Assembly (NCBI RefSeq): GCF_020745735.1
Contig: NC_083409.1
Location: 14,851,873-14,915,872, forward strand
DNA from: Hemiscyllium ocellatum
Lineage: Eukaryota
Reading direction: 5' to 3'
DNA: 64,000 bases
Part shown: positions 1 through 50,919 of the stretch, one piece after another
Layout of the letters: every line of letters begins with the position of its first letter
How positions within the stretch are numbered: position 1 is the stretch's first letter
Made by a program: the position numbers and the translations under genes
Notes under the pieces: generated by a model
The model's database searches: none
Told to the model about the DNA's origin: nothing
The model's input: the letters and a program-made list of their open reading frames with translations, nothing else

Positions 1-222
1 ACTGTTGGACAATTACATGACATCACAAAGTCTCGAGCTGAGAAGATCCAACTTACTAATCAAGGATTACAGTTCAAATTGGATGTTGAATCCTGACCCA
101 GGTCATCTTCCAAGAATCGAGAGGAGGAACACAAGACTGTTATCCAATTGGAGACATCTGAAAGAGATGACAGTGATGATGATAAGGAGGAAGTATTATC
201 TCCAGATCTTTGTCCTCGACCT
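1..222 (+). pseudogene. CEP350: CEP350 pseudo-exon: 3' end of the large CAP-Gly-containing exon (runs off the window start)
   Basis: Frame 1 reads TVGQLHDITKSRAEKIQLTNQG...DDDKEEVLSPDLCPRP, matching recalled human CEP350 TVNQLQQIKKTRDEKIQLSNQ...EDEKEEISSPDMCPRP. In-frame TGA at 94-96. Phase-0 donor reads GCAAGT (223-228). Confidence 0.85.
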
Positions 223-1898
223 GCAAGTATTAATTTTGAACCTGTTTTGGGATGGATTTGAATTTCAAGAATTGGAGATGTGTTATTGGTCTCGAAGCAT
301 TGATGCAATTGTTTTATTAATAATTCCAGAGCTGCTTAAATTCCCATGTTTTAACATACTGACAGGATTGTCATTGTTTCTGTCACAATATGTCAAAATA
401 CAACTCCACTTTTTTCAGGCACATTTTGCAGGTCATCATTTTCGGAAATTACCCTGAGTGTTCCCCTTTACTGAGGACACTTTACAAAAAGACTGTTGAA
501 TTGTTAATTATATTTGTGGGTGATAAAATCCAGCTTTGGGCAATATTAATAAAATTTCTGGTGTTTCGGTGTTTTCCACCTTGCCCATCAATTCTCAAAA
601 TATGTGTAAGTATGCTTAATTATTTCTCAAGATTTAGTGACCATTTCCACTGTGTAATTATTGAGTTTAGAACTGAAGGATTGCTTTTGAAATCCAAAAC
701 TTTTACTCTTGCACTTTTCTGTCGTTCCGAAAAGGGAGGAAGTGTTTTTAAAGATGTTCTTTTAAACTAAGTTTTTGATGATGCTTTTCAATCTCTTGCT
801 AAATCAGTTCACACACACTTTATCCAGCGTCGTGTTCTGAAGCAAAGTCCCGAGCCTGAATGACCATCTGATTAGAAGAACAGAAGTGTTTATGGTTTGC
901 ACGTATTAACATTGATTGGACAAGCAGCTCTTTTGATGAAAATGCTTGACAAGTTCTCATACTGTCCATTCCTTTCTGAGCATTCAATGTAGGAAGTCAT
1001 TGAAATAGGTGCTTGAGTCAGTTTGATTTGACACAGCAACATCCTGACTAAACTGACACATGCTTTTCTGATTTGTCAATATTTGTGTTTCCCTGTAAAG
1101 TGCAGGAATAAAAAGGGGTGCAGCAGTCAACTGAAAGTGATCTGATTTTGGAAAGCTGAAGCTCAGAACGTTCAGTCTGAAATCGTTCATTCCCCTAAGT
1201 ACACGACAGTTAGTAGATGAAGAGATTCTCCATACTCCAGGAAAGATTTGAACAGTCTGTATCAATTTCCTAAAATGGACATTATTTTCTCCATGGTAAC
1301 TCGTAACTAGCCATATTTCTTGTGATTGCATTGTTTGAAGGATATTCACGGATTTCATCACAATGTATCTGACCCGAAACTGTTCAAAAGCTGTATTCTC
1401 CCCATCCTCCACACTCCATGATAGTCAGCAGTGGGATCTCTCCCTTTGTGAGCCTCGTGAAGTATTGCTCAGTGTGTTGTGTTCTTTTCATAACAAATGT
1501 ATTTTTAAAGCTCAGGAAGACCACTTGGGATACTTTGCATCTTTGTAAAGATGATTTTTTTTTCCACCACCTTGATCAAGTCAAGTACTTTTAAAAATTT
1601 AAAATGAGTATAAAGCATTTCTCCAGACTCCATTAACTGAATTGTGTATTGAGTTTGAGTACTCAATCTGATAAAATATACTGTTTAATGTCACTCCATG
1701 TGGAAAGCTTAACTTTAATTACATGGCTGAGAATAAATTGGAAATGAATTCCAGCCTGTGTCCAACTCGTCAGACATACTCTGAGATATCAAAAGAAGGT
1801 TCTTGTTTGTTTGTCTCCCTGTTTTCATGCTTTGATTTCAGTTTTGTTCCTGACCTTCAGTTTCTAGATTGACCAACAGTCTGTGTACTTTGCAACAG

Positions 1899-2281
1899 GG
1901 CAGCCCAGTGTTTGGCACAAGTGGGCAGGAAGAATTGGCCAAATGCCTGGCAGAGTTGGAATTGATTCATGAGGCACTCGATGACCTGGTGGATGACCAA
2001 GATTGGTTTGATGAGGACTTTGGGCTGAGCTGCAGCAAAGTGCAGCATCCAGTGCAGGAGGCCCAGTCTCCACAGGATGGGCCTCTGAAAATCCACAGGG
2101 AACCTTACTTTGCTGCAGCTCCTGATGCTTGAGGTTGAGAAGATGGTTCATGCAGTGGCTGAGGAAGTTGAAGGAACTTGGCCACGATCCAGGAAATCTA
2201 CGAATACCCCTACAAATTCTTATCTTGAGAATAAGAAATGGAAAGATGTAGACAGTGTGAGCAAAAGAGTTTTTTTGTGAG
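1899..2281 (+). pseudogene. CEP350: CEP350 pseudo-exon (frameshifted)
   Basis: Acceptor ...tttgcaacAG at 1897-1898. GSPVFGTSGQEELAKCLAELEL...DDQDWFDEDFGLS matches CEP350 ESPVFGASGQEELAKRLAELEL...DDQDWFDEDFGLS. EVEKMVHAVAEE, LKELGHD and DVDSVSKRVF continue in shifting frames. Donor GTGAGC at 2282. Confidence 0.9.
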
Positions 2282-4107
2282 GTGAGCTTCAGCTTTTGCG
2301 TTTGAACACAAAATTATTTTTTCTCAATTAAACAAGAAAGGTGTGAGTTAATAGTGCTCCACAGCAGCTCTGATTAATGATATGCATAACAGAGCATGTT
2401 AAAAACATTATCTCGATCCTGATGACTGCATTGAATTCAATTTACCATTTTGCCCCTTCCATAAAAGTCCAAGGCCCCCTTTCTCCTCCACTGTTTGTAC
2501 TCTCCCATTATTAATTTATCATCATCAACCTCCTCCTCATCCTGTTATTCACTAAATCCCATCTGTCACAACTTTGCCGACTCTGAGAATCTATAGTTTC
2601 TGTTTCTATTTACATAATATCTAGTGTCTCTTCCAGTCACTCATTTTTTTGAATTCTTCTGTATCATCTGTCTTTCCATTGGTTGATAATACAACATATA
2701 ATTATTAATCATCTTCTTAAAACTCTCCAGAATCTTATCTTCCACAGGTCACTCCATAATTTTCAGATGAAGAAAGCCTTAAAGGTTGCACTTTTCTGTC
2801 CGAACTTGTAATGAGGTTCCCAAAATTGACCAAAATATTCTAAGATCTTATGCAACTTAATGTCTTAAATCGTTTGTGTGCAGTTGGATGTGTCAGGTTT
2901 TTTTTAATGGCCGTATCTATCACTTTAAATGGCCTGTATGTTTGAATACTTTGTGGCCTTTTTCTCTGATCTGATTAGGATCTTACCATTTCAGGTGTAA
3001 TCCCTTTTCTTATCCACTTAATGTATTACTTCATCTCACTCTCAACTTCAATTCCATCTTCTGGAAAATGTTCTTCTGGATCTGTCACTGCAGTACAGTT
3101 CCATCTCTGTCCCTTCAACCCAAGTCGGAATCATTTAGTTTCCTTCTCTTAAATTCCCAAGTCAAGATTGTGTTTATTACTATAACAATTAAGGGCAATC
3201 TGAGCATGGGCTCCTGTGGACCCCTTCCATTCTCCACACCTTTCTCATGTGAAATCTTTATTTTACCCCGAACCTTGCATTTTCCCAACCACCTCTATCC
3301 ATTTGACTGTGCTCCCCTTCATTTGAGGTGTTTTTGAGTTTTGCCATTGGTCTTCTCAGAGGTAACTTCTTGAAATAATTTCTGAAAATCCATGTAAAAC
3401 ATGAACACTTCTTTTCGTTCTAATCTGCTCTTTTATTAATACATCCTTGTCAAGTTATTTGGTAGTTCACAACCTGTTAATTAGAAATTCATGCCAATTG
3501 TTCCCGACTAGCTACTGTCTCTTGAAGTGCTCATATTTATCTCTATATTTTTAACTCTTAATTTACCAACAACTGAAGCAAAACTAACTGACTGAGAAAT
3601 TCCTGTTTTTCTTATTTTGATCGAGAAGTTAGCTGCCCGAAAATCCTCTGGTCAAGTTTTAGGAGCTAATAATTGGAGCCATGATAGTTGCTTTCTATTT
3701 CCAGCATGTCGCACAGAAGTCATTCATTTTTCAAAGATTTGCCTCATTTTGTGTTGTGGTGCCTTCCTTAGTTTTATATTAGTAAGCTTGTCTAATACAT
3801 CTGCACCTACCCTTGGTCGTTCTGCAATCCTATTAAACTGCTGTGCTTTTCCAGCAACACATTTTCAGCTCTGATCTCCAGCATCTGCAGTCCTCACTTT
3901 CTCCTAATCCTACTAAACCCCTTCTCTCCTGCAATCAATGATATTCTAAATTTATCCTTGATTCAGATCGTGGAGCAAACAGTTGCTATTTTCTAGATTT
4001 TGAGCAGTATTCCTTCTTGTTTTCCGTGTAGTGATCTAACGAGCTTTTTTGGCGGGGAGGGCGTATCTAATATAATTTTTTCTCTGTTAACCTTTTACTT
4101 CTTCCAG

Positions 4108-4245
4108 CTTGTATTTAACGTGACGAGAGAAATTCTCACTGAGATGTTTTCTGAAGACCCCAGTGCCAGCCAAGCCCCATGGATGAAGTCAAGCCGAATT
4201 AGCTCTGCTTTCTTCAAACGAGTGCGTAATTTAAATGAAGTGAAG
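4108..4245 (+). pseudogene. CEP350: CEP350 pseudo-exon (open, 46 codons)
   Basis: cttccAG|LVFNVTREILTEMFSEDPSASQAPWMKSSRISSAFFKRVRNLNEVK|GT, versus CEP350 AVFDLTKEIFEEIFAEDPNLNQPVWMKPCRINSSYFRRVKNPNNLDEIK. Phase 0/0. Confidence 0.9.
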
Positions 4246-4549
4246 GTGATAATTCCATGTAATTCCTTTGTCCTACTTGTCAGTAATAATGTTGCAAATG
4301 CACTGCTGGTTGGAGTCTCGGATGCTGCCTGACCTGCTGTGCTTTTCCAGCACCGCTCTAATCTAGATTCTGGTTTCCACAATCTGCAGTCCTTGTTTGT
4401 ACCTGGATCTAAAATATGTAGATTGTGTAAATGAGTGACTCAATTTGTAAACAGTGGCCACTATCCTGACTTGGAATTCTGCCACTGCTTCTTGCAACTC
4501 CTTCCCTAATGAGATTGTGGGTCTAGGTTAGCACCATCTTGTCAAGATG

Positions 4550-6345: not shown

Positions 6346-8027
6346 TGGTCATTGACTGGCAGTTTTGGTGCAAAACTTACTTGCCTCTTGCCAGTCCAAC
6401 CTGCGTATTGTCCCGATCTTGTTGCCTTTGAACATAACCCCTCAGATACTGAGTCTGTGAATGTTACTGAATATTGTGCAACTATCCGCACTTCTGACCT
6501 TATGATGGAAGGAACTGAAGAATCCCATTTTACTCTGGTCTCCCCGATGATCCTCGAGGAACCTCATTTTACTCCCAACTGAAGTCACACAGTAATAGTC
6601 TGAGTGTTAACCATGGCTCAGTGGCACTCTTCCTCAGTCAGCAGAGGGGAGTAAGCAAATACTAACGTGAAATCCTGGATGACAGTCCTGGTGCAGTACT
6701 GGAATATGGTTTTCAAAATGAAACCCTATTTTCCCCCTTGGGTGAGTTTTTTTAAGAGTTTTGATGTGACATTGAAGAGGAGTGGAGTTCTCCCTCATGG
6801 TCCTGGTCAATCTACTACATGAGTCAGTATGGCTCAACGTTTACTGAACCATTTCCCTAATTTGTGGGAACATGCTGTGTGAAAGTTTGTGGCAGCTTTT
6901 GACGATATTATAATAGTGAATATACTTCAAAGGCTGAGAACAACATGCTACAAGTGTGAAATGTGATGTATATTTGCAAGTTGTTTTTGGCAATTTGAGG
7001 TTAAGGTGGATGACTTGAGCTTTGGTTACAAAGTATTGTCCAACACGAAGACCAAGTTCTTTACTATTGCAGCAATGCAACTTCTATTTTACTATGGCAC
7101 TGACATTGAAGTGTACACTGGATGTCTCCTTCCAGTAACTCAGACTTGCAACACTGCAATGTGAACTTTTTACCACGGTCTAAAGTCAACATCAAGCTGC
7201 TCATTGTCTAGCCTGACTTCACTTTGTACACAGTTTGTGAAGTGTTGCACTTTGCCAGGGACTGAGAATGGACATGTGTAAATCAGCTTTTCATTCACAG
7301 AGCAAATTTGGGACTGTTCATTTCCTTTGTTTTGTCTTTTTAACTTGACTGTAATGTGTCTTCAGTCTGAACTGTACTATTTCCCACACCAACATTTCCA
7401 GGCGTGTTACTTGCCTTTGACAAATCTTCCTGTCTGGAGCCACGTGAGGCAGTGGTCAGTGGTTAGATCATATAGTTTTGATGAACTCATCTGTTAAACT
7501 GAGAATGATTTAACCTTCCTGAAATGCTGGGTCCACTGTATGAATCCACGTCAGCCCCAATATTTATTGTGAGACTTCCCATAGCACTGATCTTGAGTTG
7601 TCTGCCTACAGTCTGTGAAAGGCAGAACATTTCTGGAATTCGACAGAGCAGAGGCTTCTTAGAAGGTGCTGTTGGCAAAGTGCTGAACCATGTAATGCAG
7701 TGAATCATTAAATGAAATAATTAATCATTTCTCAGCCAAGGTCTTAGGCAAGAGAAAGTGTCAAACCTTCTCAATCTGGGAGTGTTGCACGCTCCCTTCA
7801 TGTTGTTTTGTATATGTTTCGGATCTCACTGATGCTATTCACTTAAATACTTGAAAACTTAATGATAATTTAGCAGATTTTTGTTAAATAGAACATGCTT
7901 TGAGTTTCATCCAATTTTGCATCTTCATTGAGCAGTTTTAGAGTAGGATAATGGCTTGTGGATTGTTTTGTCTGTGTATTTAGGGTGTTTGTAACAGCTG
8001 CCATTTCTCCTGTGCTGCTATCCCCAG

Positions 8028-8150
8028 ATCTTTATTTCTAATGAAGTTATGATGTTGTTTGGATTTAACCAAGAGAAATAGCAGAAGACAGCTTGGCAGA
8101 AGATGAAGAAATTTGGCAGGAGAAAACGTGATTGAATGACCCGTATTTTG
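8028..8150 (+). pseudogene. CEP350: CEP350 penultimate coding pseudo-exon with two stops
   Basis: ccccAG|IFISNEVMMLFGFNQEK*QKTAWQKMKKFGRRKRD*MTRIL|GTAAGT, versus SFIASEVLKLFSLKKEPNHKTDWQKMMKFGRKKRDRVDHIL. Stops at 8079-8081 and 8133-8135. Confidence 0.9.
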
Positions 8151-8516
8151 GTAAGTGCTTCAGTTTTGGAATTGTTCAGTTTTACATTGTAGCATTGCGT
8201 CACGATTATGAACACTGCATCATACATCTGAACTTTCTATTATTTCAAATGGCAAATGCTTTATCTGTTTTTGGCTTACCTGTCTGGCTCTCCAGCACAC
8301 ATCCAGAAAATGCTTCAACTTTCTGATTGAATTGAAAACTTGGGTCCTCACTGGAGTAATTTGCTGAAAACCAAATCCTACTATTCCTTAGTTGCCAGAA
8401 ACGTTTTAAAAAATATTCAGAAGTACATTGAATTCAGTGCAGTTGGCAAAGTAGGGTCATGTGTAGTTCTTTAATTCCCAATGTTTAATTTCACTTTCTG
8501 TCCATGTTTCCTTCAG

Positions 8517-8662
8517 TCCTATGATGAGTTTGTAAAGAAGACCGAAGCTGAACCCAGTAAAGATCTCGATGTTGCCAGGTCAAACTCAACCAAACCGCAG
8601 ATTAAAGCTCTGTACTCCACTGCTACTGAGAAACCGAAGATTAAACCTCCCTCTCTGCAGAG
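8517..8662 (+). pseudogene. CEP350: Internal CEP350 exon lying out of order (normally upstream of the large exon)
   Basis: cttcAG|SYDEFVKKTEAEPSKDLDVARSNSTKPQIKALYSTATEKPKIKPPSLQ-R|GT, versus recalled CEP350 SYDEFIKKTEAELSQDLETSPTAKPQIKTLSSASEKPKIKPLTPLHR. Open frame, phase 0/2. Confidence 0.85.
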
Positions 8663-9229
8663 GTACTTTCAGTAATGGATGTTAATTGTAACCTTATGAA
8701 GGGATGCCTCTTGTATTTATCTTTTTTACCCGAGTGGAAGCCCTTTTGTCCAAATTAGTTGGTGATGAAGTGGTTCTTTAGTTAAGGAGACCAGTGCTTT
8801 TACAGAGACTTTACAGCAGGGAAACGTGCCTTTTAGTCCAACAGACTCGTGCAGTTATTTCGTCTCCATGCAAGTCTACTCCCACTTTGTTTCATCCCAT
8901 CAGTGCATCCTTCTGTATGTTTCTCCCTGAGGTACTTATCTAACTTCCCCTTTAACAAATTTGTGCTATTCAACTTAAGCATCCCGGCTCTAGCAAGTTT
9001 CATGTTGTCACCTTTCTCAGGGAATAATGTTTTGTTTTGAATTTGTGATTCAATTCGTTAACGTGAACTTCCTGTTCAGTCAGCCTCACAAGTGTCATCT
9101 CCCACCCCCCCCCCTCTAACCAAAAAAATGCCCTCCCGTGTGTTGCTAAGGTAAGGTGTTTCAATTGATATTTCTTGTGTATCGTGTTATTGATTAACAA
9201 TTAGCTGTTAGTTGGTTGTTGAATAAGAC

Positions 9230-12200
9230 CATAAAGAAGTACTAGAAATTATTTAGTTCATAAATTTGTATAAATGAATTAAATAAGTAGAGATGTTTGG
9301 ACAGGTGATGGGCTGGAGCTGCATGGTGTGGGAGCTGGCTGATCCCATTGTGAAGGACAGTGACCACATCTGCAGCAAGTGTTGTTTGCTAAAAAAACTC
9401 CGGATCAGAATCAATGATCTGGAATCTGAGCTTCAAACACTGCGGTACATCCGGGAGGGGGAGAGTTACCTGAACGCTTTGTTTCAGGAGGCAGTTACAC
9501 CCGATAGATGAAGTAATTCAAATTCAGTTCGTGGTCAGGGGCAACAGGGTGTGACTGTAAGTGAGGCAGGTAGGGGGATTCTGAGTTCAGGAGTGGAGGA
9601 GCCTCAGTCCTTGACCTTGTCAAACAGGTATGCAATTTTTGCTTCCTGTATGGGTGAGGAAAAGTGCTGTGGGCAGGATAAGCCAGCTGACCACTGCAAC
9701 ATGGTGCAGAAGGCCATTCAAGAAAGGGAGTAAAAAGACAAGTAGTTGTTACAGGGGATTCGGTAATTAGGGGTAATTTGCAAGCCGGATTGGGAGTCCC
9801 ACATGGTGTGTTGCTTGCCCGGTGCCAGGGTGCAGGACATCTCCGATTGGCTTGAAAGGATATTGGAACAAGAGGGAGAAGATCCAGTTGTTGTGATCCA
9901 TGTTGGCACTAACAGCATAGACAAGGCTAGGCATGTGGGCCTGTGTGGGGAGTATAAAGCACTAGGAAGGAAATTGAAGAATAGATCCTCGAGGGTTATA
10001 ATCTCTGGATTACTGCCCGAGCCACGTGCTAATTGTCATAGTGATAAGAAAATGAGGGAAATAAACACGTGGCGAGGAGATTGGTGTGGGAAAGGAGGTT
10101 TCCATTTCATGGGACATTAGCATCAGTTTTTGGAACCTGGGCGATCTGTACCGATGAGACAGTCTCCACCTGAACCGATCTGGAACCAGTGTTCTGGTGA
10201 AAAGGATAAATTGGGTGGTCACTAGGACTTTAAATTTATGAGTCTGGGGAAAGGGAAAGCAACAGGGAGTATGGAGCCAAATAGAAAGATAAGCAGTGGG
10301 TTAGCATGTGTGCAGGGTTTAAGTTCAAGGCAGACTAGAATTAAGTAAAAAAGAACATTAACTTAGAACATATTAGTAGAGATGTTGAAAATCATGAGGA
10401 TAAGAAAACTAGCATTAAGGCACTTTACTTGAATGCTCATTGTATTCGTAAGAAAGTAGATGAATTAACAGCACAAATCATGGTGAATGATTATGATGTG
10501 GTAGGCATCACAGAGAGATGGTTGCATGGGGGTTCAGGACTGGCAGTTAAACATCCAAGGATTTACAACTTAGAGAAAGAGTGGACAGAGTTGCCTTTTT
10601 AGTTCAGAATGACATAGCGTCAGATGACTTGGATTCTGTGTGGGTGGAGTTGAGGAACCATAAAGGCAAAAAAACCATAATGGGCATTATGTACAGACCT
10701 CCCAGCAGTGTTCAGGACTAGGGGCCCAGATGTACCAGGAAATAGGGCATATCAGAAAGGCAAGGTCACGATGATCATGGGGAACTTCAATATGCAAAGG
10801 ACTGGGTGAATAATGTTGCCAGTGGATCCAAAGAAAGGGAATTCATGGAATGCTTACAGGATGTATTTTTGGAATGTCTTGTGATGGAGCTTACAAGAGA
10901 GCAGGCTGTTTTGCACTTAGTGCGATGTAATGAGCTAGACGTTGTAAAAGATCTTAAAATAAGGGAGCACTTAGGAGGCAGCGATCATAATATAGTCGCG
11001 TTCAGTCTGCAGTTTGAAAGGGAGAAGGAAAAATTGGTTGTAATGGTGTCAAAGTAAAATGAAGGTAATTACAGGGGCATGAGAGAGGAACTGATAAAAA
11101 TCAAGTGGAAGCAGAGCCGAGTGGGGAAGACAGTAGGCAGGAGTTTCTGGGTGTAATTGAGGATGCAGGACAAATGTTCAGCCCAAAAAAAATTATACAG
11201 GGGTGGGGGGAGGGGGGTGGCGGGGGCATTAGACAGCCACGGCCAACAAAGGAAGTCAGGAAATGTATCAAAGAGAGAGCAAGCCTATAAACTGACCAAG
11301 AGCACTGGGAAATCAGAAGATTGGGAAGATCGTGAAAACAAACAAAGAGAGAAATAAAGAAGGAGAGGATCAAATAAACTTGCCAGTAATGTTAGAAATG
11401 ATAGTAAAAATTTCTTTCAATACATAAGAAACAAACAAGAAGCAAAAATAGAAATTGGGGCCATTCCAAATTGACACAGGAAGGCTTGCGATGGGAGATA
11501 AGGCTGAAGAACTTAATCACTCTTCAAAGTGGAAGGCATGAGTAATATCCCAACAGTGAAGGAGAGTTAGGGACAGATTTGAGTATGGTATCCATTCCAA
11601 AAGAGAGAGCGCAAGAAAAGCCAAAAGGTGTAAAAATTGAAAAATCCCCTGGCCCAGTTGGGCTCCATTCCAGATGTTCTGAGAGACGTGTTTGAGGAAA
11701 TAGCAGAGGCGTTGGTTGTCACTGGAGTCAGAGAACGTCCCAGATGATTGGAAAATCGCTTTTGTAACTCCCTTGTTCAAGAAAGGATCAAGACAAAAGA
11801 TGGAAAATTTATAGCTTTGCCCAACCTCGGTTGTAGGAAAATTCTAGAATCCATCGTTAAGGATGAGATTTGTATGTTCTTGGAAGTGCAGGGTCTGATG
11901 AAAACAAGCCAGCATGGATTTAGTAAGGCAAGGTCATGCCTGAAAAACTTGTTGGCATTCATTGAAGAGGTAACAAGTAGGTTAGACCAGGGAAACCCAG
12001 TGGATGTGATCTATCTAGATTTCTAAAAGGTCTTTGGTAAAATGCCTCATGGGAGGCTCCTGAGTAAGGTGAGGGCCCATGATGTTTGAGGTGAGCCACT
12101 GGCATGGATTGAGGTTTAGCTGTCTGAAAGAAGGCAGAGAATTGGGGTAAAAAGTTCTTTTTCAGAATGGCATCTGGTGACAAGTGGAATCCACCAGATT

Positions 12201-13183
12201 CAGTGTTGGGACTGCAGCTGTTCACTTTATATATTATTGATCTGGATGAAGGAACTGGGGGCTTTCTGGTGAAGTTCACCGATGATAAGAAGTTAGGTGG
12301 ACAGGCAGGATGTTCTGAGGAGGTGGGGAGACTGCAGAACGATTGAGACAGTTTAGGAGAGTGGTCCAGGAAATGGCTGATGAAATTCAACGTGAGCAAA
12401 TGTGAGGCCTTGCACTTTGGAAAAAAGAATACAGGCATGGACTATTTTCTAAACGGTGAGAAAATTCCTAAAGCCAAAGTACAAAGGGATCTGGGAGTGC
12501 TAATCCAGCATTCTCTAAAGATTGACTTGCAAGTTGAGGCCGTGGTGCAGAAAGCAAATGTAATGTTGTCATTTATCTCGAGGGTTGGAATATTAAAGCA
12601 GTGATGTGCTTATGAGACTTTATAAAGCTTGAGATAAGCCTCACTTCAAACACTGTGACCTATTCTGGGCCCCACACCTCAGGAAGGACATACTGGCACT
12701 GGAGCGTGTCCAGCAGAGATTCACGCGGATGATCCCTGGAAAAAGTAGGCTGAACATGTGATGAATTTCTGAGGATCCTGGGATTGTATTCATGAGAGTT
12801 TAGAAGGTTGAAGGGAGATCTACAAGAAACTTACAAGACACTGCATGGCTTAGAAAGGGTGGACGCTGGGAAGTTGTTTCCGTTAGGCTGGGAGACTAGG
12901 ACTCATGGGCACATCCTTAGAATTAGAGGGGGTCAATTTAGAATGAAAATGAGGAGACACTTCGTCAGCCAGAGAGTTGTTGGCCTGTGGAATTCATTGC
13001 CGCGGAGGCCGGGATGTTAAATGTCTTCAAGGCAGATTGCAAGATCAAGAATTTATCAAGGTATTAAGGGCTACGAGGAGAGTGCGGATAAGTGGAGTTG
13101 AAATGCCCATCCGCCATGATTGAATGGTGGAGTGGGCTCAATGGGTCGAATGGCCTTACTTCCACTCCTATGTCTTATGGTCT
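9230..13183 (+). mobile_element. Near full-length degenerate CR1 LINE (ORF1 Zn-finger/SGNH esterase; ORF2 endonuclease-RT)
   Basis: ORF1 pieces CMVWELAD...CSKCCLL and CCLPGARVQD...VVIHVGTNSI. ORF2 pieces GGSDHNIVAF, SQHGFSKARSCLKNLL and MKFNVSKCEALHFG. Tail ...cctatgtcttatggtctt. Many stops and frameshifts. Confidence 0.9.
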
Positions 13184-13224
13184 TCATTTTTAAACTTCGC
13201 CATCAAATCTTGTTTTCAAAGTTC

Positions 13225-13950
13225 TCTCTGGTTACTAGTTTATACAGTTAATGGTCGGGCCCTGTTGCTGAGCAAAGAGACCTTGGGATGCAGGTGCACA
13301 GTTTCTTGAAAGAGGAGTTGCCGGTAGAAAGAGTGGTGAAGAAGGCATTTGGCATGCTTGCCTTCAATGGTCAGAACATTGACTGTAGTGGTTGAGGCAT
13401 TGCGTTGCAGCTATACAGGACATTGGTGAGGCCTCGCCTGGAATACTGTATACAGTTCTGATCGCTTTTCTATAGGAAGGATGTTAAACTTGAGAGAGTG
13501 CAGAAAAGATTTACAAGTATGTTGCTGGGACTGAGTTACAGGGAGAGGCTGAATAGGCTGAAGTATTTTTCCCCATTTGCATTGGAGGCTGAAGGGTTTT
13601 TGCAGAAGTTTGTAAAATCATGAGGGGCATGGATGGGGTGAATAGCCAAGATTTTTTTCCCAGGGCAGGGGAGCCATAAACTTGAGGGCCAAGGTTTAAG
13701 GTGAGAGGTGAAGATTTAAAAAGGGCCTGAGAGGTAACGTTTTCAGGCAGAGGGTGCTGTATACATGGAATGAGCTGCCAGAGTGGTGGAGAGGGGTTCA
13801 ATTTTAACTTTTCGAAAGCATCGGGATGGGTACATGAATAGGAAGGGTTGAGAAGGATATGGACCAAATGCTGGCAAAGTGGGCTAGGTCGCATTGAGAT
13901 ATCTGGTTTGTGCGGGTGAGTTGGGTCTGCTGTATAACTGACTCTGTGAC
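13225..13950 (+). mobile_element. CR1 LINE 3' fragment
   Basis: CR1 RT C-terminal and 3' UTR sequence, similar to other copies in the window. Confidence 0.75.
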
Positions 13951-14949
13951 CACTTGCCTTTTGACCCCCATGCTCAATCAATCTTTTGAGATGAAATATT
14001 TCGTGGCCAGAACTGTTTGGAGTTTAACATTGTTTTAAAAAAAATGCATTTGTAATGAAGTCGATCTGTTTATTCTGTATATGACAAAGAAAGAGAATAA
14101 ATCATTATTTTTAAAGATGAAATGTTGGCAGAAGGTTGCATTTGACACAAAATCTGTATACTTGCTGCTGCAGAATATTATATGTTCATATAGAATATAA
14201 TCAGTTCAGTTGGGTGGCTTTTTGAGATGTGCCTTAAAGCAGTCTAGTGGGTGAAAGATTTCTCCAAAGTATTGAGTATTGTTGGAATGGAGAACTGCCA
14301 CATATATTGTGATCCGACCCCCATGGTGAAACTTTTCAAATAATGAAATGGACAAGATCACTGCCCATTCATATTCAATCCCCTTTTATACATGACATAT
14401 GACCTTTGTTTTGCTTCCCACTTCCCTATCTCTATCTCCTGAGGATCTGAAACCTGAATACAGACTGAGGTAACTAGTTGTTGTCAGGAACAACCACTTA
14501 ACCCATGCTGTTAGTGATTTAAGTGGGAATAAAATGGCTTCTCGATGCAAATAATATGACAAAAAGGCTTCTCAGCTGCAAATTGACAATTCTGTTAAAA
14601 GCTGCATAAAATAGCTTTTAGCGCTGTTCGAGCTGCATAATTGACTAATCACAGTCTGCCTCAACAGGATTAGCAGACAATGCTTCCTTTACAGCATAGA
14701 AATAACTAGACTAGATGAGACATTACTGGCCACCCTAACTGACCTTCAAGTGCAGATGGCAAGACTCGGTTAGTGAGGTGAGGGTGGCTTAAATGTTGGA
14801 AAACAAAGTTGGTTCCCAGGAAATATCATTGGAGCGAGTAGCTTTCAATTAAGATTGTTTCATAAGTTAGTTGGTAATTGTCTGAATGTACTATACGATA
14901 ATGGCCTGTACCTTTCTTTAAGAGAAGTATAAAAATGTCTGTTTTAAGG

Positions 14950-16075: not shown

Positions 16076-16447
16076 TTTACACTTGCTCCATAGTTCTCTA
16101 TTTCCATCCCTACTCTCAATCTCACTGAGTTCTGATCACTGTCACTGAAATGCTCCCCCATTGATAGCCCTTCCAGCTGCCCACATTCATTCCCTCAATA
16201 ATGGTCCAAGACTGTCTCTTCTCTTTCACTATCACCCTCTCAGGGGAAATTAGGGATGGGTAATGAATGCTGGCCCGACCAGTGACACCCACATCCCAAG
16301 ATGTAATTTAAACAATGTCTGTTCTTTTATGGGGTTTATGAGGAGTTGGCGACAAATGTTCAAAATGGATTGTTTTGCCAGTTCATGTTCGGAGAGTTAA
16401 AATCCCTTCAAAAGGCAGGGATTAAAATTGCTTCTCTTGTCTTTCAA

Positions 16448-16781
16448 CCTGAGAGAACTCTCAGCCCAAGCTGACCCTGCTGCCCCCTCCCCGGAGCAGA
16501 TCAGTACCAAAGGCACTGCCACCCTGGTGTGCCTTGCCAATCACTTCTATCCCGATAAGCTGGCGGTGCAGTGGAAGAAGGACGGTGCAGTCATTTCGGA
16601 CGGGGTTCAGACCAGCAACTACCTGCGAGCTTCGGACAGCACCTACAGTGTCAGCAGCCTGCTGACCCTCTCTGGGTCTGACTGGGAGTCCAACGCTCGC
16701 TTCTCCTGTGCCCTCACGCATGTGGCCCTCCCCTCTACCCTCAGCAAGAGCATCAGGAGATCAGAATGTGTGTGTGTGTGA
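16448..16781 (+). pseudogene. IGKC: Ig light chain kappa (type III/NS4) constant exon, copy 1; canonical acceptor lost; no V/J found upstream
   Basis: SPEQISTKGTATLVCLANHFYPDKLAVQWKKDG...YSVSSLLTLSGSDWESNARFSCALTH...SECVCV*; both Cys and the Trp are present. Acceptor reads ttcAA (16446-16447) where copy 2 has ttcAG. Five C in the LPPS run where the reading frame needs six. Stop shifted by a GT microsatellite. Confidence 0.9.
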
Positions 16782-17299
16782 GACAGTCCACAGAGGAGAC
16801 ACAACTTTAAATAGAACAGCGCTGAGCTGGCAGAACAAAGGTCGTTGTCAGCACTGAATTTCAACTCTCTTCCTTCTTGGGATTGGTTTGGCGACACTTC
16901 TGAGGTTCAAGTGTTAAGGCAGGTCATTGCGATCATCAAAAAGAAGCTCTACTCTCTATCAAACCCCATGCTGTCCCTGTTCTGGGAGTGTTTGACTGGG
17001 GCAGTGATGACCTGTGATGCCAAATCAAACCTATTGAAAATGCTGAAATCTGTCAGCTGTACAAAACAATGTGAACCTCAGAAGTCTCTGCTTCAGTAAA
17101 ACAGACCTACTTCCTGCTCAGCTATCAGTTCCAATTTTAGGTTTTGTCCCTGTTTAAAGGGACATGATTCTTAGGTTATTGAGAAAATCTCCACAAGTGT
17201 TTTCCTCAAGCTCCATTGTGGCTGTGAATTTGTGCAGCTCCCTCTGTCTGGGCTGTTAATTGCTGACTGTTTTCTGTCAATGTCAATCTGGAAAAGGGG

Positions 17300-17305
17300 A
17301 ATAAA
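17300..17305 (+). promoter_or_regulatory. Probable polyadenylation signal of kappa C copy 1
   Basis: AATAAA about 520 nt after the stop, conserved at the homologous position in copy 2 (33173-33178, minus). Confidence 0.6.
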
Positions 17306-18816
17306 GATGAAGAAGATTCAGTCTCTGTCTCGTGTGTGCTTTGGAAATGGCCAGAGCTGAAGCCTCAGGGAAAACTGTGTGAAGTGTTCACCTCCACGCT
17401 CAAGGCCTGGAGAATGAGGGAGAGAATCGAGGGGGCAATGGGGTCCCCGGAGCAGGAGGGCAATGCTACCATTGTGTCCAGAAGGGGCACTTTCAGTAGT
17501 AATGCACAACCCCAAGGAAGTCTTTCCCAATAAATAGGGAAAAGAAGGAAGGCAGAAGAGGACAATGGGGAACACAATAATCTGATGGATATTCCCCATC
17601 AACCCTCACCCATCCCTTCGGCACAGCAAGATTACAAGCCAAGAAATTCAAATCAACTGTTTGGGAGCCAGAGCCACTGGGAACCCTATATTGATGAATG
17701 TGACCAGCAGGACCTTGTTACTCAGAATAACAATTGCACAATAACAATTTGGGAAATAAATATTCCATAAATTAGACCTGGGTTTTCTTTACTCTTCAAA
17801 TGAGATGGAATTGCCCCGTGTGTCCCTGGGGTCAGATTGAGAATGTTCAGTCTGGGGGAGTCTGGGAGTCACGGCTGGGGAGGACAGTCAATGATAAACT
17901 GGTTCCACTTTCTGCTGTCATATTCTGTAGCCCCTGGGCCATCTCAGTGACAACCATCCAGGGCTCAGGGTGGATTCCAGAGCAGCTCATTGTCCTGACT
18001 GTTGTGTTCCTCAGTCCACACGTGGCTCCAGCAATCTCACTCCATGGTTCTCGTACCAGTGGGAACCATGGGGCTGAAATCTTATCCAAACAGACCCTCA
18101 CACAGCGGGGAGGCTGCTGGTGGCTCAGAAACCCCTTGGATTCAGTCCCAGATTCCACTGCGGCTCTTTCATCAAACACAGCATTAGCACACTGACACCA
18201 CATTCAGAGGGCAATCCTGAGATGGGGCAAGTTTGGTTCTTGATTCTAATGTGAGGAAATGGGGGCTGGGTGTGAAATGTCTAGTCTGAAACTGGTGGGG
18301 GTACTTTATAATGAAGAATAGAAACTGATGTCGGAATAAAGTCAGGTGTTGATGGGAATGAGAACTATCTCAGTGATCTGTCTCCAGAATCCACAGACTA
18401 CACACATCCTTCTGTCAGATCCTGTAGTCTGAGAAGAGTCCTTGACATCTAATATTTCTCCAACTTTCCCAAAAAAGGTGAAATATTTTCTGTGTCAGTG
18501 ATTCCCTGGAACAGGACATTTTAAAAAGGGCTGTGGGAAGGGAATCGTTGGCTCTCAATGACAAAGCCAATGGAAGGATGTGGAGCTGGCTCTGTGAAAT
18601 GTTAGGGCACAGAGGATGACACCAGAAACATTTCAATGTTGTCGCTCTCTCCTTTGCAATTGCTAAACTGGTAATAATTGGTATTCCCTCACAATGTGCT
18701 CTCTTGTATTCGATCCATTTGCCTTTCTTGCTTTGCTTCTTTTGACTTTGTTCTGTGGGTAAGTTCCATCAAAACCCAATCTCCTCACACTCATCCAGGC
18801 CCCTGAAGAGATTCAA

Positions 18817-22042: not shown

Positions 22043-22237
22043 GCTGAAAATGTGTTGCTGGTTAAAGCACAGCAGGTTAGGCAGCATCTCAGGAATAGGG
22101 AATTCGACGTTTCGAGCATAAGCCCTTCATCAGGAAACGTCGAATTCCCTATTCCTGAGATGCTGCCTAACCTGCTGTGCTTTAACCAGCAACACATTTT
22201 CAGCTGTGATCTCCAGCATCTGCAACCTCATTTTTTC
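22043..22237 (+). mobile_element. Young Penelope pLTR fold-back insertion with 18-bp target-site duplication
   Basis: Identical 72-bp inverted arms at 22042-22113 and 22134-22205 with a 20-nt spacer. TSD CTCCATTCTCCTAAATGA at 22025-22042 and 22238-22255. Confidence 0.9.
22101..22136 (-). ncRNA. Minimal hammerhead ribozyme motif (type A), core intact
   Basis: TTC-CTGATGA-A-GGGC-TTAT-GCTC-GAAAC-GTC-GAA. Confidence 0.75.
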
Positions 22238-22683
22238 CTCCATTCTCCTAAATGATATGAACAAGAGAAAAGGCAAGAATAAAGAGTATAAGGACACCAC
22301 CAGTGACCTCCTGAAATTCATAAGAACTCTCATCCAGCACTTTGATGAAAAGTAAGAGTATGTGAACAATGCTTGGTGACATTGTCCTGCTTTTTCAATT
22401 TTTAGCATCGATTCAATGCATGAAGAGTCTTTCTTCCTCCTTCCCACCTTGAAACTCTGAGATGATCAAACCCAGCCACAGTTCATGTGACGGGTTGAGG
22501 GGATTGTCTAATGATCAAAAGAGGGGATTGAGAAGTATGGGAGGAGATTTCACTAAAACATTTTAAATTCTCCAGGGCCCTGACAGGGTAGATTTTGGAA
22601 GGATGTGCCCCTACCTGGGGATTCTAAAGCAGAGTCACAGTCTGAGAATAAGAGGTTAGACATTTCGATCAGAGATGAGGAAT

Positions 22684-25477: not shown

Positions 25478-25598
25478 GTTCCACAGTTTAATGAAGAGTC
25501 CAGAAGATTATAGCTTTGGGTTATTTCCTGATCTCATTGTTGCTGTCTACAAGGCTGTGAAGGACACAGAGTGGAAGAAGTACTTTCCAAAAAAATAG
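25478..25598 (+). pseudogene. RNASEL: RNase L-like terminal coding exon (open)
   Basis: ttttcAG|g then FHSLMKSPEDYSFGLFPDLIVAVYKAVKDTEWKKYFPKK*, versus recalled human [38 protein letters not shown]. Its phase-2 start splices in frame with the exon ending at 22351. Confidence 0.85.
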
Positions 25599-31668: not shown

Positions 31669-32946
31669 CAAGTACTGCAGATGCTGGAAACCAGAGGCTA
31701 GATCAGAGTGGTCATGGAAAAGCACAGCAGGTCAGGCAGCATCCAAGGAGCAGGAAAATCAATGTTTTGGGCAAAAGCCCTTCATCAGGAATAGAGGCAG
31801 GGTGCCTGCAAAGTGGAGAGATAAATGCGAGGGGGTTGGGGAGAAAGCAGCATAGAGTACAATAGGTGGATGGGGGTGGGGATGGAGGTGATAGATCAGA
31901 GACGAGGCTGTAGTGGGTAGGTGGAAAGGAAGATAAGCAGGTAGGACAGGTCATGAGGATGGTGCTGAGCTGGAAGTTTGGAGCTGGGGTGAGATGGGGG
32001 AAGGGGAAATGAGGAAACTGGTGAAATCCACATTGATGCCATGGGATTGAAGTGTTCCGAGGTGGAAGATGAGGTGTTCTTCCTCCAGTTGTCGGGTGGT
32101 GAGGGAGCAGCGGTGGAGGAGGCCCAGGACCTGCCTGTCCTTGGCAGAGTGGGAGGGGGAGTTGAAATGTTGGGCCACAGGGCGGTGGAGTTGATTGGTG
32201 TGGTTGTCCCGGAGATGTTCCCTAAAGCGCTCTGCAAGGAGGCGTCCAGTCTCCCCAATGTAGAGGAGACCACAGCAGGAGCAACAGATAAAATAAATGA
32301 CATTGGTGAGTGTGCTGGTAAAAATTTGATGGATGTGGAAGGCTCTTTTGGGGCCCTAGATGGAGGTGAGGGAGGAGGTGCGGGCGCAGGTTTTGCTATT
32401 CCTGTGGTGGCAGGGGAGGGTGCCAGGAAAGGAGGGTGGGTTGTTGGGGGGTGTGGACTTGACCAAGTAGTCATGGAGGAAACGGTCTTTGCGGAAAGCA
32501 GGAATGGGTGGGGAGGGAAATACATCCCTGGTGGTGGGGTCCATTTGGAGGTGGCGGAAATGTCATCGGATGATGTGGTTTATGCGAAGGTTGGTAGGGT
32601 GGAAGGGGAGCGCCAGGGGGGTTCTGTCCTTTTTATAGTTGGAGGGGTGGGGTTTGAGGGTGGAGGGGTCGATGTGGACGAGATGCGTTGGAGGACATCT
32701 TTGACCACATGGGAAGGGAAATTGCGGTCTCTAAAGAAGGATGCCATCTGGTGTGTTCTGTGGTGGGAGGAAATATGGCGGAGGCAGAGGAATTGGGAAT
32801 GCGGGATGGCATTTTTGCAAGAGGTGGGTTGGGAAGAGGTGGAATCCTCGGTGTCGGTGGGTTTTGTAAAAAATGTCAGTTTCATTAATAGAGATGGAGA
32901 GTTCCAGGAAGGGGAGGGAGGTGTCAGAGATGGTCCAGGTTGTCAT
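31669..32946 (-). mobile_element. 5'-truncated Penelope-like element (RT C-terminus, GIY-YIG, pLTR with decayed hammerhead at 31757-31792)
   Basis: Minus frames give LPFLELSIS..., KNAIPHSQFL, NVIYFICCSCCGLLYIGETGRLLAERFREH and AQHFNSPSH...LIFHLGTLQSHGINVDF. Confidence 0.9.
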
Positions 32947-33172
32947 TAATGGAGATCTGTTTGGAATCTGGTAACATCCAATGATTCCAGATCAAAGGGA
33001 TAATTTGAAAGTGATTGATGATTGGCTGTCAGTATCCTCTACAACGGATGTGTCATTGATTGACAGGCCAATTAGTCAATTGTGACAATGCCATGCTGAA
33101 ATACAGCCAATCAACTGAATGGAGTGGTCAGTCTCCAAAGCAGACAGACACAGGGACTGAATCTTCTTCATC

Positions 33173-33704: not shown

Positions 33705-33989
33705 CTACACACATTCTGATCTCCTGATGCTCTTGCTGAGGGGAGAGGGGAGGGTCACGTGAGTGAGGGCACAGGAGAAGCGAGCATTGGACTCCCAGTC
33801 AGACCCAGGGAGGGTCAGCAGGCTGCTGACACTGTAGGTGCTGTCCAAAGCTCGCAGGTAGTTGCTGGTCTGAACCCCGTCCGAAATGACTGCACCGTCC
33901 TTCTTCCCCAGGGTGGCAGTGCCCTTGGCATTGACCTGCTCCGGGGAGGGGGGGCAGCAGGGTCAGCTTGGGCTGAGAGTTCTCACGGC
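33705..33989 (-). pseudogene. IGKC: Ig kappa constant exon, copy 2: +1 frameshift and 45-bp deletion
   Basis: Intact acceptor tctttcAG (33991-33990). RENSQPKLTLL, then seven C instead of six. The 45-nt deletion (junction 33907/33908) removes the first Cys through Trp segment. Remainder matches copy 1 and ends SECV*TAG. Confidence 0.92.
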
Positions 33990-38799: not shown

Positions 38800-38820
38800 C
38801 CCAGTGCCCCACGCAAGTGA

Positions 38821-38907
38821 AGAAGGGCTCAGGCCCGAAACGTCGACTCTCCTGCTCCTTGGATGCTGCCTGACCTGCTGCGCTTTTCCAGCAACACATT
38901 TGCAGCA
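38821..38907 (+). mobile_element. Short type-A pLTR insertion starting inside the hammerhead core
   Basis: GTGA|AGAAGGGCTCAGGCCCGAAACGTCGAC. 14-bp TSD CCCCAC(G/A)CAAGTGA at 38807-38820 and 38908-38921. Confidence 0.75.
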
Positions 38908-39305: not shown

Positions 39306-39620
39306 CAGCATGGTGGCTCAGTGGTTAGCACTGCAGCCTTATAGTACCAGGGTCCCAGGTTTGAATCCAGCCTTGGGTGACTGTCTGTGTGGAGTTTGCA
39401 CATTCTCCCTGTGTCTGCGTGTTTTTCCTCCGGGTGCTCTGGTTTCCTTCCACAGTCCAGAGGTGTGCAGGTCAGGTGAATTGGCCATGCTAAATTGTCC
39501 ATAGTGTTTGATGCATTACTGAGAGGGAAATGGGTCTGGGTGGGTTACTCTTCGGAGATCAGTGTGGACTTGTTGGGCCAAAGGGCTTGTTTCCAAACTG
39601 TAGAGAATCTAATCTAATCA
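39306..39620 (+). mobile_element. HE1-type V-SINE
   Basis: Full head, V-domain and aatctaatctaatc tail. Confidence 0.9.
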
Positions 39621-42084: not shown

Positions 42085-42111
42085 CTGCTGCTGCTGCTGC
42101 TGCTGCTGCTG
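42085..42111 (+). repeat. (CTG)9 microsatellite
   Basis: Direct read. Confidence 0.95.
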
Positions 42112-42485: not shown

Positions 42486-42519
42486 TCAGTCTGAGTTTGG
42501 TTCCTTTCCCGAACGTGTA
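42486..42519 (-). pseudogene. IGKJ: Ig kappa J segment (YTFGKGTKLRL) with GC donor
   Basis: FGKG motif. Ends CTG A| so that A plus GC from the C exon gives ...LRLS-RENSQP. Intron starts GCAAGT (42485-42480). Confidence 0.92.
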
Positions 42520-42558
42520 CACAGTGAGAGCTCCCAGTGCAGAGGCTGTATAAAAACC
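42520..42558 (-). other. J recombination signal, 23-bp spacer
   Basis: Heptamer CACAGTG (42520-42526, plus strand), 23 nt, nonamer ATAAAAACC (42550-42558; consensus ACAAAAACC). Confidence 0.92.
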
Positions 42559-43002: not shown

Positions 43003-43030
43003 GGTTTTTGTATGGCTCTGTATCACTGTA
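43003..43030 (-). other. V recombination signal, 12-bp spacer, defective heptamer
   Basis: Minus strand TACAGTG-atacagagccat-ACAAAAACC; the first heptamer base is T instead of the invariant C. Confidence 0.92.
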
Positions 43031-43326
43031 AAGGCTGCTGCTATACTGCTGACAGTAATAGTCAGTGACATCCTCATTCTGAATGTTGCTGATTGTCAGG
43101 GTGAAACTGGTCCCTGATCCACTGCCGGTGAATCGATCGGAGACTCCTGTGAATCGAGTTGCTGCATTATAGATCAGGAGAGAGGGTTTCTGACCTTCTC
43201 GCGGCTGGTACCAAGCAAGGTTGCTGCTAATGCTTTGACTGGTCATACAGGTGGTGGTTGCAGTCTGGCCCAGTCCCACTGACAGCACCGGGGGAGACTG
43301 GGTCATGATGATGTCCCCACTGATAC
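43031..43326 (-). pseudogene. IGKV: Ig kappa V exon, open frame, unrearranged
   Basis: ctcAG|[27 protein letters not shown]...LAWYQ...[20 protein letters not shown]...[11 protein letters not shown]; Cys-Trp-Cys intact. Called a pseudogene because of the RSS defect. Confidence 0.92.
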
Positions 43327-43512
43327 CTGAGGGGTCAGAGAGAAACACAGTGAAGTCAGAACTGTCACAGAAAGAGCCGGTCAAATGAGAGATTGTTGGA
43401 GACACTGAGCATTCCTCTGGTTTCAGCATTTTCCCTTCAATCACAAGTCAGTGGAATTGGAGTCAAGTGGAGAGCAGCTAAAGATTCAAGGTGGAAGGAG
43501 AGAGATTTGTAC

Positions 43513-43561
43513 CTGCGATACAGAATGCCAGGGGCCAGATTAACTGGATGTGTGAAATCAT
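43513..43561 (-). CDS. IGKV: Ig kappa leader exon MISHIQLIWPLAFCIA(G)
   Basis: ATG at 43561, 49 nt, phase-1 GT donor, in frame with the V exon. Confidence 0.88.
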
Positions 43562-43620
43562 GGTGTGTGCTCCTGTCCCTGTGCCTCGTTCCTGATCAAT
43601 TCTCCCTTCACTGGGCTCTG

Positions 43621-43701
43621 CTTTATAAAGCTGCAGCCTGTGAGAGTCTGACTGGGTGTTCCTCAGTATGTAAATGGCATCAGGCAGAGAGAGCCACGTC
43701 A
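43621..43701 (-). promoter_or_regulatory. V promoter: TATA-like, variant octamer, CRE/E-box-like site
   Basis: CTTTATAAAG at 43621-43630; ATTTACAT (octamer consensus ATTTGCAT) at 43668-43675; TGACGT at 43696-43701. Confidence 0.6.
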
Positions 43702-50880: not shown

Positions 50881-50919
50881 TTCCATATGTTTCCATGTTT
50901 ATGAACAGTCTCTCAAACA

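Follow-up and report, generated by a model that had tools for sequence, protein, structure and literature searches.

The window analysed here, a 64-kb stretch of Hemiscyllium ocellatum NC_083409.1, is very probably a decayed part of a multi-copy region of immunoglobulin (Ig) kappa clusters (type III/NS4-like) on a hemiscylliid shark chromosome, with a history in which duplications carried passenger sequences along. The broken end-pieces of CEP350 and RNase L that stand beside the kappa cluster were most likely co-copied during cluster duplication. A sequence-only reading of this DNA had reported four components, namely disabled CEP350 exons, a lone kappa constant (C) exon, two RNase L-like exons and an inverted V-J-C cluster; all four have been confirmed as real, well beyond chance. 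That reading had given the span 1-43701, and the exact coordinates come from the present analysis. The window holds no working or new gene and is ordinary duplication debris of moderate synteny interest.

Truncated copies of CEP350 and RNase L

With Chiloscyllium punctatum CEP350 (P0242, 3286 aa) as the tblastn query, five matches were obtained in the window, all on the + strand between 1 and 8.7 kb and with E values ranging from 1e-13 to 1e-38:

1..252, + strand: CEP350 pseudo-exon a, aa 2940-3019 (E 1e-31, 80% identity); one in-frame stop; exon cut by the window start
1896..2290, + strand: CEP350 pseudo-exon b, aa 3014-3141 (match 1899-2274, E 1e-38)
4099..4254, + strand: CEP350 pseudo-exon c, aa 3140-3194 (E 9e-19, 75% identity); open frame with a 3-codon deletion
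8025..8153, + strand: CEP350 pseudo-exon d, the penultimate exon, aa 3191-3233 (E 1e-13); two in-frame stops
8511..8663, + strand: CEP350 exon-equivalent e, aa 2142-2192 (E 2e-18, 84% identity); open, AG and GT retained

Pseudo-exon b, which in phmmer matches CEP350 proteins of about 3,000 aa, shows four frame switches (0>1>2>1>2) in a three-frame read-out and retains its acceptor AG and donor GT. Taken over all its exons, the copy thus carries three stop codons together with four frame switches, in agreement with the earlier description of these exons as disabled. Four of the pieces follow the order of the gene, and the fifth (aa 2142-2192) lies downstream of aa 3191-3233. As exon e is out of gene order behind exon d, a rearrangement junction is located between 8154 and 8510. 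Neither the terminal CEP350 exon nor a match to the CAP-Gly domain was found in the window. In a phylogenetic tree, the copy falls together with the CEP350 genes of Chiloscyllium and Hemiscyllium (support 100/99), on a branch of 0.18 compared with 0.010-0.016 for the working genes, i.e., more than ten times longer. It is a lineage-specific offshoot which branches inside the bamboo/epaulette shark family.

Further downstream, two exons of RNase L are found, the first of which is split by a repeat:

21987..22351, + strand: RNase L penultimate exon (KEN domain); 5' end putative, donor GT at 22352, interrupted by a repeat
22043..22239, no strand assigned: palindromic (hairpin) high-copy repeat of 197 bp, inside the penultimate exon
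25478..25598, + strand: RNase L last coding exon; open, stop at 25596-25598, splice phase fitting the penultimate exon

In a comparison with the whole Protein Data Bank, both exons match pig RNase L best, at consecutive protein positions (residues 625-668, E 0.18, for the penultimate exon; residues 675-711, E 0.004, for the last one), which bears out their earlier assignment. Among 93 + strand pieces, they are also the only matches to the Pfam family Ribonuc_2-5A. Their E values (0.0022 and 0.044) correspond to scores below the gathering threshold because the pieces are short: about 85 C-terminal residues are present, and the last exon aligns to positions 96-125 of the 127 in the family. No match to the ankyrin (Ank) or kinase (Pkinase) exons expected upstream was obtained among 158 + strand reading-frame pieces from 8.7-25.4 kb. 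The 197-bp repeat is flanked by 16-bp direct repeats (22027-22042 and 22240-22255), which represent a target-site duplication. It has a very high word depth in reads and further copies within the window, and it gave no match to the Rfam hammerhead families.

Since the CEP350 and RNase L fragments keep introns and most of their AG/GT splice signals survive, the sequence supports a copying process that would have operated at the DNA level and not at the RNA level.

The inverted kappa cluster and the orphan constant exon

Kappa segments occupy both strands of the window, together with remnants of mobile elements:

9300..14000, + strand: LINE-type retrotransposon remnant between the CEP350 pieces and C1, with a GDSL/OSK esterase-type ORF
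16448..16781, + strand: kappa C exon C1, an orphan pseudo-exon; Pfam C1-set E 3e-21; 92% identity to annotated shark kappa
16235..17345 and 34193-33134: arms of an inverted duplication around C, 83.7% identity over 1.1 kb
31900..33000, - strand: Penelope-like element remnant (GIY-YIG, Pfam E 5e-5), just past the end of the C1/C2 homology
33705..33989, - strand: kappa C exon C2 of the inverted cluster; 45-base in-frame deletion and 1-base insertion
42486..42558, - strand: J segment, coding part 42519-42486 (YTFGKGTKLRL)
43003..43561, - strand: kappa V gene; leader 43561-43513, V exon 43326-43031, open

The LINE remnant is similar to RT-bearing repeats at 40-41, 46 and 57-58 kb of the window.

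Leader, V, J and C are all located on the - strand between 43.56 and 33.7 kb, as had been claimed for the inverted cluster, and at 9.9 kb the distance from V to C is in line with that in annotated working clusters (8.6-9.2 kb). The V exon (Pfam V-set E 3.5e-12) contains the Cys23/Trp/Cys88 framework and all canonical residues, and V is 92% identical to a C. punctatum protein annotated as 'immunoglobulin kappa light chain-like'. Its recombination signal consists of the heptamer TACAGTG (43030-43024), a 12-bp spacer and the nonamer ACAAAAACC (43011-43003); the heptamer thus begins with T at an essential position, in contrast to CACAGTG in the paralogous cluster L002. The J signal comprises the nonamer GGTTTTTAT, a 23-bp spacer and the heptamer CACTGTG, and the J splice donor reads GC instead of GT. 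Both nonamers are of good quality.

C1 is indeed a lone exon, no V or J having been found upstream of it on the + strand. It carries an acceptor changed from AG to AA at 16447, a 1-base deletion in a C-run (5 C, 6 needed) and a 3-base loss at the stop. In all other contigs of four read sets, position 16447 is G, and the extra C is present in some of them; the C1 lesions are therefore private to the window copy. In C2, the deletion removes the VCLANHFYP..VQW strands, including the first Cys and the Trp, and the insertion extends the C-run to 7 C where 6 are needed. Hence, neither C1 nor C2 is an intact, J-spliceable C1-set constant exon. The two exons are 96% identical, compared with 84% for their downstream flank, which suggests that their "dead" status may be recent: either the C exons were selected until recently, or sequence was exchanged by gene conversion.

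For annotation, the window serves chiefly as a warning: its remains of CEP350 and RNase L count as pseudogene fragments and its two C exons as dead, and no gene is to be called from any of them.

Proposed duplication history and alternative explanations

The region upstream of V is shared with other kappa clusters:

43700..51800, - strand: V-gene upstream flank, collinear with kappa clusters L001 and L002 (blastn, blocks of 68-93% identity)

Because this flank is collinear in two other clusters, it is part of the duplicated unit. The same two clusters are also collinear with the window at 16.3-18.8 kb, within the same range of identity. In addition, the interval from C1 to RNase L is represented in the read sets of three organisms by 2-15 distinct contigs per listed site, in several diverged versions. 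The sequence-only reading had proposed that kappa clusters expand by segmental duplications which carry and scramble neighbouring genes. This proposal is largely supported by the decayed, intron-containing CEP350 and RNase L copies among kappa segments, by the shared kb-scale flanks and by the diverged versions in three organisms. Against it stands L001, the sole other complete cluster read, in which the 10 kb around the gene are free of CEP350 and RNase L fragments; passengers are thus absent from some clusters, or placed further off. The read sets contain neither a read nor a contig that bridges the long junctions, so the long-range order is that given by the assembly.

The following mechanism can be proposed. 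Kappa V-J-C miniclusters would have multiplied by segmental duplication at the DNA level, with units of tens of kb copied in tandem as well as in inverted orientation. The founding cluster may have been directly flanked by the parent genes, CEP350 and RNase L, and an early duplicated unit would have included the 3' end of each, so that later copies would carry intron-containing tail fragments as passengers. The window copy would then have decayed neutrally and undergone further rearrangements, in a presumed order: inverted duplication of the C exon would have left the orphan C, a junction would have put a mid-gene CEP350 exon behind the penultimate exon, and the LINE, Penelope-like and hairpin repeats would have been inserted.

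It is very unlikely that the mosaic does not exist as one molecule and was produced by mis-joining reads from a repetitive multi-copy region. The region is multi-copy and repeat-rich, no contig spans a 6-kb test stretch (the longest fitting pieces being a few hundred bases), and in both C1 and C2 one homopolymer run has a length other than that of the intact exon. These C-run changes could be assembly errors, whereas the loss of the C1 acceptor and the 45-base deletion of C2 cannot be explained in this way. Furthermore, the duplicated arms, at 84% identity, are too diverged to be collapsed copies, a contig of 197 bases, present in two studies of the same organism, is identical to 17467-17663, and the V-to-C span is that of annotated clusters. 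Transposon-mediated exon capture, e.g., LINE 3' transduction or pack-type DNA transposons, would instead have moved the CEP350 and RNase L pieces near kappa without their being co-duplicated neighbours. While LINE, Penelope-like and hairpin repeats do lie between the pieces and one CEP350 exon is out of order, kb-scale introns are kept and four consecutive CEP350 exons remain in order over 8 kb, far beyond typical transduced or captured fragments. Neither terminal repeats nor poly-A tails bracket the fragments in the sequence examined, and in four species the parent CEP350 lies on the chromosome that carries kappa genes, which makes capture very unlikely.

A retained function is also distinctly improbable. 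Three forms of it can be considered: the V could rearrange to a nearby working cluster, the orphan C and gene tails could be regulatory or produce non-coding RNA, or a transcribed "mini-CEP350" paralogue could extend upstream of the window. The open V exon with all its canonical residues, the higher identity of the C exons (96%) than of their flank (84%), and the open frames and intact splice sites of CEP350 exons c and e and of the last RNase L exon would be compatible with such a role. However, the CEP350 copy is interrupted by 3 stops and 4 frame switches and its branch exceeds those of its parents more than tenfold, both C exons are broken, and the V heptamer and J donor are off-consensus (T at the essential first position and GC, respectively). 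As the CEP350 and RNase L pieces are, moreover, truncated and disrupted, a protein product from any piece of the window is not likely. Among the listed sequencing runs containing the stretch, none is recorded as RNA, which is weak evidence in the same direction. Duplication of kappa clusters with passenger gene tails, followed by decay, is therefore the preferred reading.

Linkage of kappa with CEP350 and comparison with known systems

In C. punctatum, H. ocellatum, Cetorhinus maximus and Scyliorhinus torazame, the chromosome-scale record with full-length CEP350 has the same length as the one with kappa genes, which places both on one chromosome in four shark species from three orders. As regards CEP350, synteny in these species supports the linkage. 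The sequence-only reading had known of no described linkage between kappa and the CEP350/RNase L block, and our literature search likewise found no paper describing one.

In humans, CEP350 and RNASEL are located on 1q25, which is part of the chromosome-1 MHC paralogous region, and not beside IGK on 2p11. It is conceivable, albeit doubtful, that the principal kappa region of sharks in general arose next to CEP350 and RNASEL or between the two, in a block corresponding to human 1q25; the two genes may instead be neighbours whose shared position in human 1q25 is coincidental. In the former case, kappa would belong with the antigen-receptor genes tracing to the proto-MHC neighbourhood, and the gene tails present in every copy would be built-in markers to date and order minicluster amplification. 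How Ig miniclusters are distributed over shark genomes "is not well known", and IgH and some IgL loci have been placed in a proto-MHC-related complex (PMC12227049). The intron-containing tails, together with the CEP350-kappa linkage in four species, provide a concrete synteny anchor for kappa, and the shared breakpoints and private lesions of the passengers offer a practical route to reconstruct how the clusters multiplied.

Compared with the hemiscylliid CEP350 gene (~129 kb, 3287 aa), the window copy has 75-84% amino acid identity to the last ~300 residues and one mid-gene exon, shares family-specific residues and keeps the exon-intron layout. However, it is reduced to five exon-equivalents with stops, frameshifts and one misplaced exon, and it lacks the CAP-Gly domain and the terminal exon. 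Similarly, the two RNase L exons share a strand, follow each other as in the gene with compatible splice phase, and together correspond to the final part of the KEN domain (pig 625-711). RNase L combines ankyrin repeats, a pseudokinase and the KEN nuclease, whereas the window copy is devoid of ankyrin and kinase exons and its penultimate exon is split by a repeat.

The inverted cluster has the layout of cartilaginous-fish kappa (type III/NS4) miniclusters, with one V bearing a 12-RSS, one J bearing a 23-RSS ~0.5 kb away and one C ~8.5 kb further, and its V is 84% identical to a nurse-shark V-C chain. It differs from cartilaginous-fish Ig light-chain miniclusters in being non-functional (C deletion and frameshift, TACAGTG heptamer, GC donor) and in having an extra orphan inverted C exon beside it. 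At a larger scale, the window is reminiscent of segmentally duplicated antigen-receptor loci, such as human IGK with its inverted proximal/distal duplication and the non-Ig fragments and orphons of IGL/IGK; two large inverted duplications of human IGK have been described (PMC11327106). In both cases, inverted and tandem Ig copies occur with their flanks and truncated neighbour genes and have later decayed. In contrast to human IGK/IGL, the passengers in the window are the 3' ends of CEP350 and RNase L, and the unit is a whole shark minicluster.

Kappa segments and their lesions

As the sequence-only reading had anticipated, the kappa segments of the window comprise a lone C exon on the + strand (C1) and an inverted V-J-C cluster on the - strand. 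In the latter, the leader, V, J and C exon (C2) have all been located.

Kappa exons of the window
16448-16781, +, C1, lone kappa C; C1-set, Pfam E 3e-21
33989-33705, -, C2; 45-base deletion, C-run of 7 bases versus 6 needed
43326-43031, -, V exon; open
43561-43513, -, leader; open

The V exon shares 92% identity with C. punctatum 'immunoglobulin kappa light chain-like' proteins, 79-93% with Hemiscyllium ocellatum kappa light chain-like proteins and 84% with a nurse-shark V-C chain. These identities point to a hemiscylliid (bamboo/epaulette-type) shark as the source of the DNA. The V recombination signal consists of the heptamer TACAGTG followed, after a spacer of 12 bp, by the nonamer ACAAAAACC, whereas the paralogous V of L002 carries CACAGTG (L001 and L002 being further kappa clusters, both taken from an earlier C. 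punctatum assembly). The J possesses a nonamer GGTTTTTAT, a 23-bp spacer and the heptamer CACTGTG; its coding part is normal, and its splice donor is GC in contrast to GT in the paralogue L001. The V-to-C span (9.9 kb) is similar to that of annotated clusters (8.6-9.2 kb). The donor after J (42485-42480) reads GCAAGT and not GTAAGT, that of the L002 J (near 11250) reads GGAAGT, and GCAAGT in place of GTAAGT is also found after the first CEP350 piece, exon a (222-228). The two GCAAGT donors could reflect either decay or the use of GC-AG introns.

Upstream of C1, no V or J was found on the + strand. This exon is 92% identical to a working kappa C and exhibits three lesions: its splice acceptor is AA in place of AG (at 16447), its C-run has 5 bases versus the 6 needed by the reading frame of reference proteins, and 3 bases are lost at the stop. 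When public contigs of four runs from three organisms were aligned to 16400-22360, position 16447 was G in every covering contig, in all runs and organisms, and an extra C after 16482 was present in some contigs of each of the four runs. Judging from these contigs, the C1 lesions are private to the window copy. In C2, the 45-base deletion takes out the strand bearing both the invariant tryptophan and the first disulphide cysteine. Homopolymer errors could account for the C-run length changes in C1 and C2 but not for the other lesions of the two exons.

C1 and its flanks (16235-17345) are an inverted copy of C2 and its flanks (34193-33134), with 83.7% identity, and a further inverted-copy block pairs 15394-15561 with 35633-35465. 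The exons themselves (16448-16781 versus 33989-33705) are 96% identical, as against 84% for the downstream flank. This contrast suggests that C1 and C2 were constrained for much of their history and lost function recently, or that they were homogenised by gene conversion between the inverted copies. A Penelope-like remnant with a GIY-YIG motif, identified with Pfam (31900-33000, -), sits exactly at the end of the downstream-flank homology.

Fragments of CEP350 and RNase L

An open 92-residue piece (1854-2129, +) was compared with 1.84 billion representative proteins. Its matches fall in the C-terminal part of proteins of ~3,000 amino acids (best E 1.4e-17), named centrosome-associated protein 350 in their sources. 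With the C. punctatum CEP350 protein (P0242) as tblastn query, five + strand exon-equivalents were delineated; the disabled CEP350 exons claimed earlier were thus recovered, with stops, indels and one piece out of order.

CEP350 pieces of the window
1-252, +, exon a, aa 2940-3019; one in-frame stop
~1896-2290, +, exon b, aa 3014-3141; frames 0>1>2>1>2
4099-4254, +, exon c, aa 3140-3194; open, 3-codon deletion
8025-8153, +, exon d (penultimate), aa 3191-3233; two stops
8511-8663, +, exon e, aa 2142-2192; open

The frame changes across exon b imply four indels. Exon e is located 358 bp beyond exon d, yet it belongs ~1,000 codons upstream, which places a rearrangement junction between 8154 and 8510. 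The terminal CEP350 exon was searched across the whole window and is absent. Since the acceptor AG and donor GT are mostly kept and the introns are kilobases long, the pieces are DNA-level copies and a retrocopy origin is ruled out. No shark protein turned up when shorter 'mini-CEP350' gene models were sought with P0121:2200-3248 as query. A maximum-likelihood tree (344 columns) nests the window copy within the clade of Chiloscyllium plus Hemiscyllium, with support 100/99, after the divergence of this clade from zebra and whale shark, on a terminal branch of 0.18 versus 0.010-0.016 for working genes. This placement and branch length indicate that the window copy is a lineage-specific duplicate which has since been evolving without constraint.

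The two exons likened to RNase L proved to be consecutive in the protein, on one strand and in the correct order, and they are the only Ribonuc_2-5A matches among 93 + strand pieces.

RNase L pieces and inserted repeat
22122-22352, +, best Protein Data Bank match RNase L residues 625-668, E 0.18
25437-25595, +, sole Protein Data Bank matches pig and human RNase L, residues 675-711, E 0.004
22027-22255, 197-bp near-perfect palindrome with 16-bp target-site duplication; related copies near 21159-21243, 38818-38906, 61493-61585 and 62798-62895

Donor (22352) and acceptor (25476-25477) are compatible in phase. None of 158 + strand pieces from the 8.7-25.4 kb interval matches an ankyrin or protein-kinase domain; the last two RNase L exons are all that is present. 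C1 and C2, inverted relative to each other, lie on either side of this tail, which is oriented tail-to-tail with C2. The penultimate exon is split by the palindromic repeat (22043-22239), flanked by two copies of the direct repeat CCATTCTCCTAAATGA, and a continuous RNase L frame is regained once the 197 bp are removed in silico. The repeat has a very high abundance in read sets, with further copies inside the window. By eye, a CTGATGA...GAAAC motif can be read on its - strand; Rfam returned no hammerhead in 21.9-22.4 kb with the E cut-off relaxed to 1, the sole hits being miRNA-type hairpins below threshold, and no hammerhead or other family for the whole window at gathering level.

Duplication of the kappa unit

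The window is gap-free vertebrate DNA (G+C ~38-51%) in which LINE-type, Penelope-like and short hairpin repeats are abundant throughout. A SINE-like family, also present in L001, is interspersed, in either orientation, between the gene fragments (22584-22883, 23373-23800, 29610-30120 and 39306-39620), its copies translating as similar 'PHS..DLGSIP..GDCLCGVC' strings.

Two parts of the window align collinearly with L001 and L002 at 68-93% identity, namely 43.7-51.8 kb, upstream of V, and 16.3-18.8 kb, downstream of C1; the duplicated unit thus extends over many kilobases of flanking DNA. Within 10 kb of the L001 gene, neither RNase L nor CEP350 pieces were found, and these passengers are therefore not beside every cluster. 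A 64-base match of 21871-21932 to L001 was discarded as an RNase L exon marker, being a common short repeat, and protein P0352, considered as a cluster member, is actually a bacterial SlyX on a bacterial contig and irrelevant. In L001 (C. punctatum scaffold BEZZ01000502.1), V and J are germline-joined in one continuous open exon (10232-10585) whose end consists of FGKGTKLQLS followed by a GT donor, with an intact C exon ~3.5 kb downstream.

Across the 6-kb interval that reaches from C1 to the RNase L exon, contigs with a similarity of 85% or more cover 30/30 bins in 4/4 runs, and the non-repeat parts of the interval show 2-15 distinct contigs per listed site; two studies of one organism share an identical 197-base contig. 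Contig depth does not equal copy number, and these data are read as several diverged copies of the interval in each of the three organisms. The window may nonetheless be mis-assembled, as its long junctions are spanned by no contig of the four runs, but copies this diverged speak against collapse. Collectively, the inverted C arms, the L001 and L002 flanks, the contig variants and the CEP350 tree support well the earlier proposal that kappa clusters have spread by segmental duplication, carrying broken pieces of neighbouring genes. The window locus itself is non-functional debris, of interest for synteny and for its fragments as markers of amplification history.

CEP350 and kappa genes on shark chromosomes

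In full-text literature searches for CEP350 or RNASEL with shark and immunoglobulin, no linkage was described, in agreement with the earlier statement. A 2025 paper on elasmobranch antigen-receptor linkage describes the genomic distribution of miniclusters as not well known, and its examined parts mention neither CEP350 nor RNASEL (PMC12227049). For the kappa and CEP350 genes, look-ups in chromosome-scale assemblies listed no neighbour within 10 kb. In each of four species, full-length CEP350 and kappa genes are assigned to records whose lengths are identical.

Length of the record shared by CEP350 and kappa genes
C. punctatum, 135,915,806
H. ocellatum, 116,467,424
Cetorhinus maximus, 105,773,345
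Scyliorhinus torazame, 323,493,442

In S. torazame, several 'centrosome-associated protein 350-like' models (P0233-P0235; 3259, 2535 and 2539 aa) share the 323-Mb record with kappa genes, and CEP350 may also be duplicated in this catshark. From the identical record lengths, CEP350 and kappa genes are on the same chromosome in three shark orders. The ancestral 1q25-like block postulated in the sequence-only reading, tested for CEP350 only, can reasonably be inferred.
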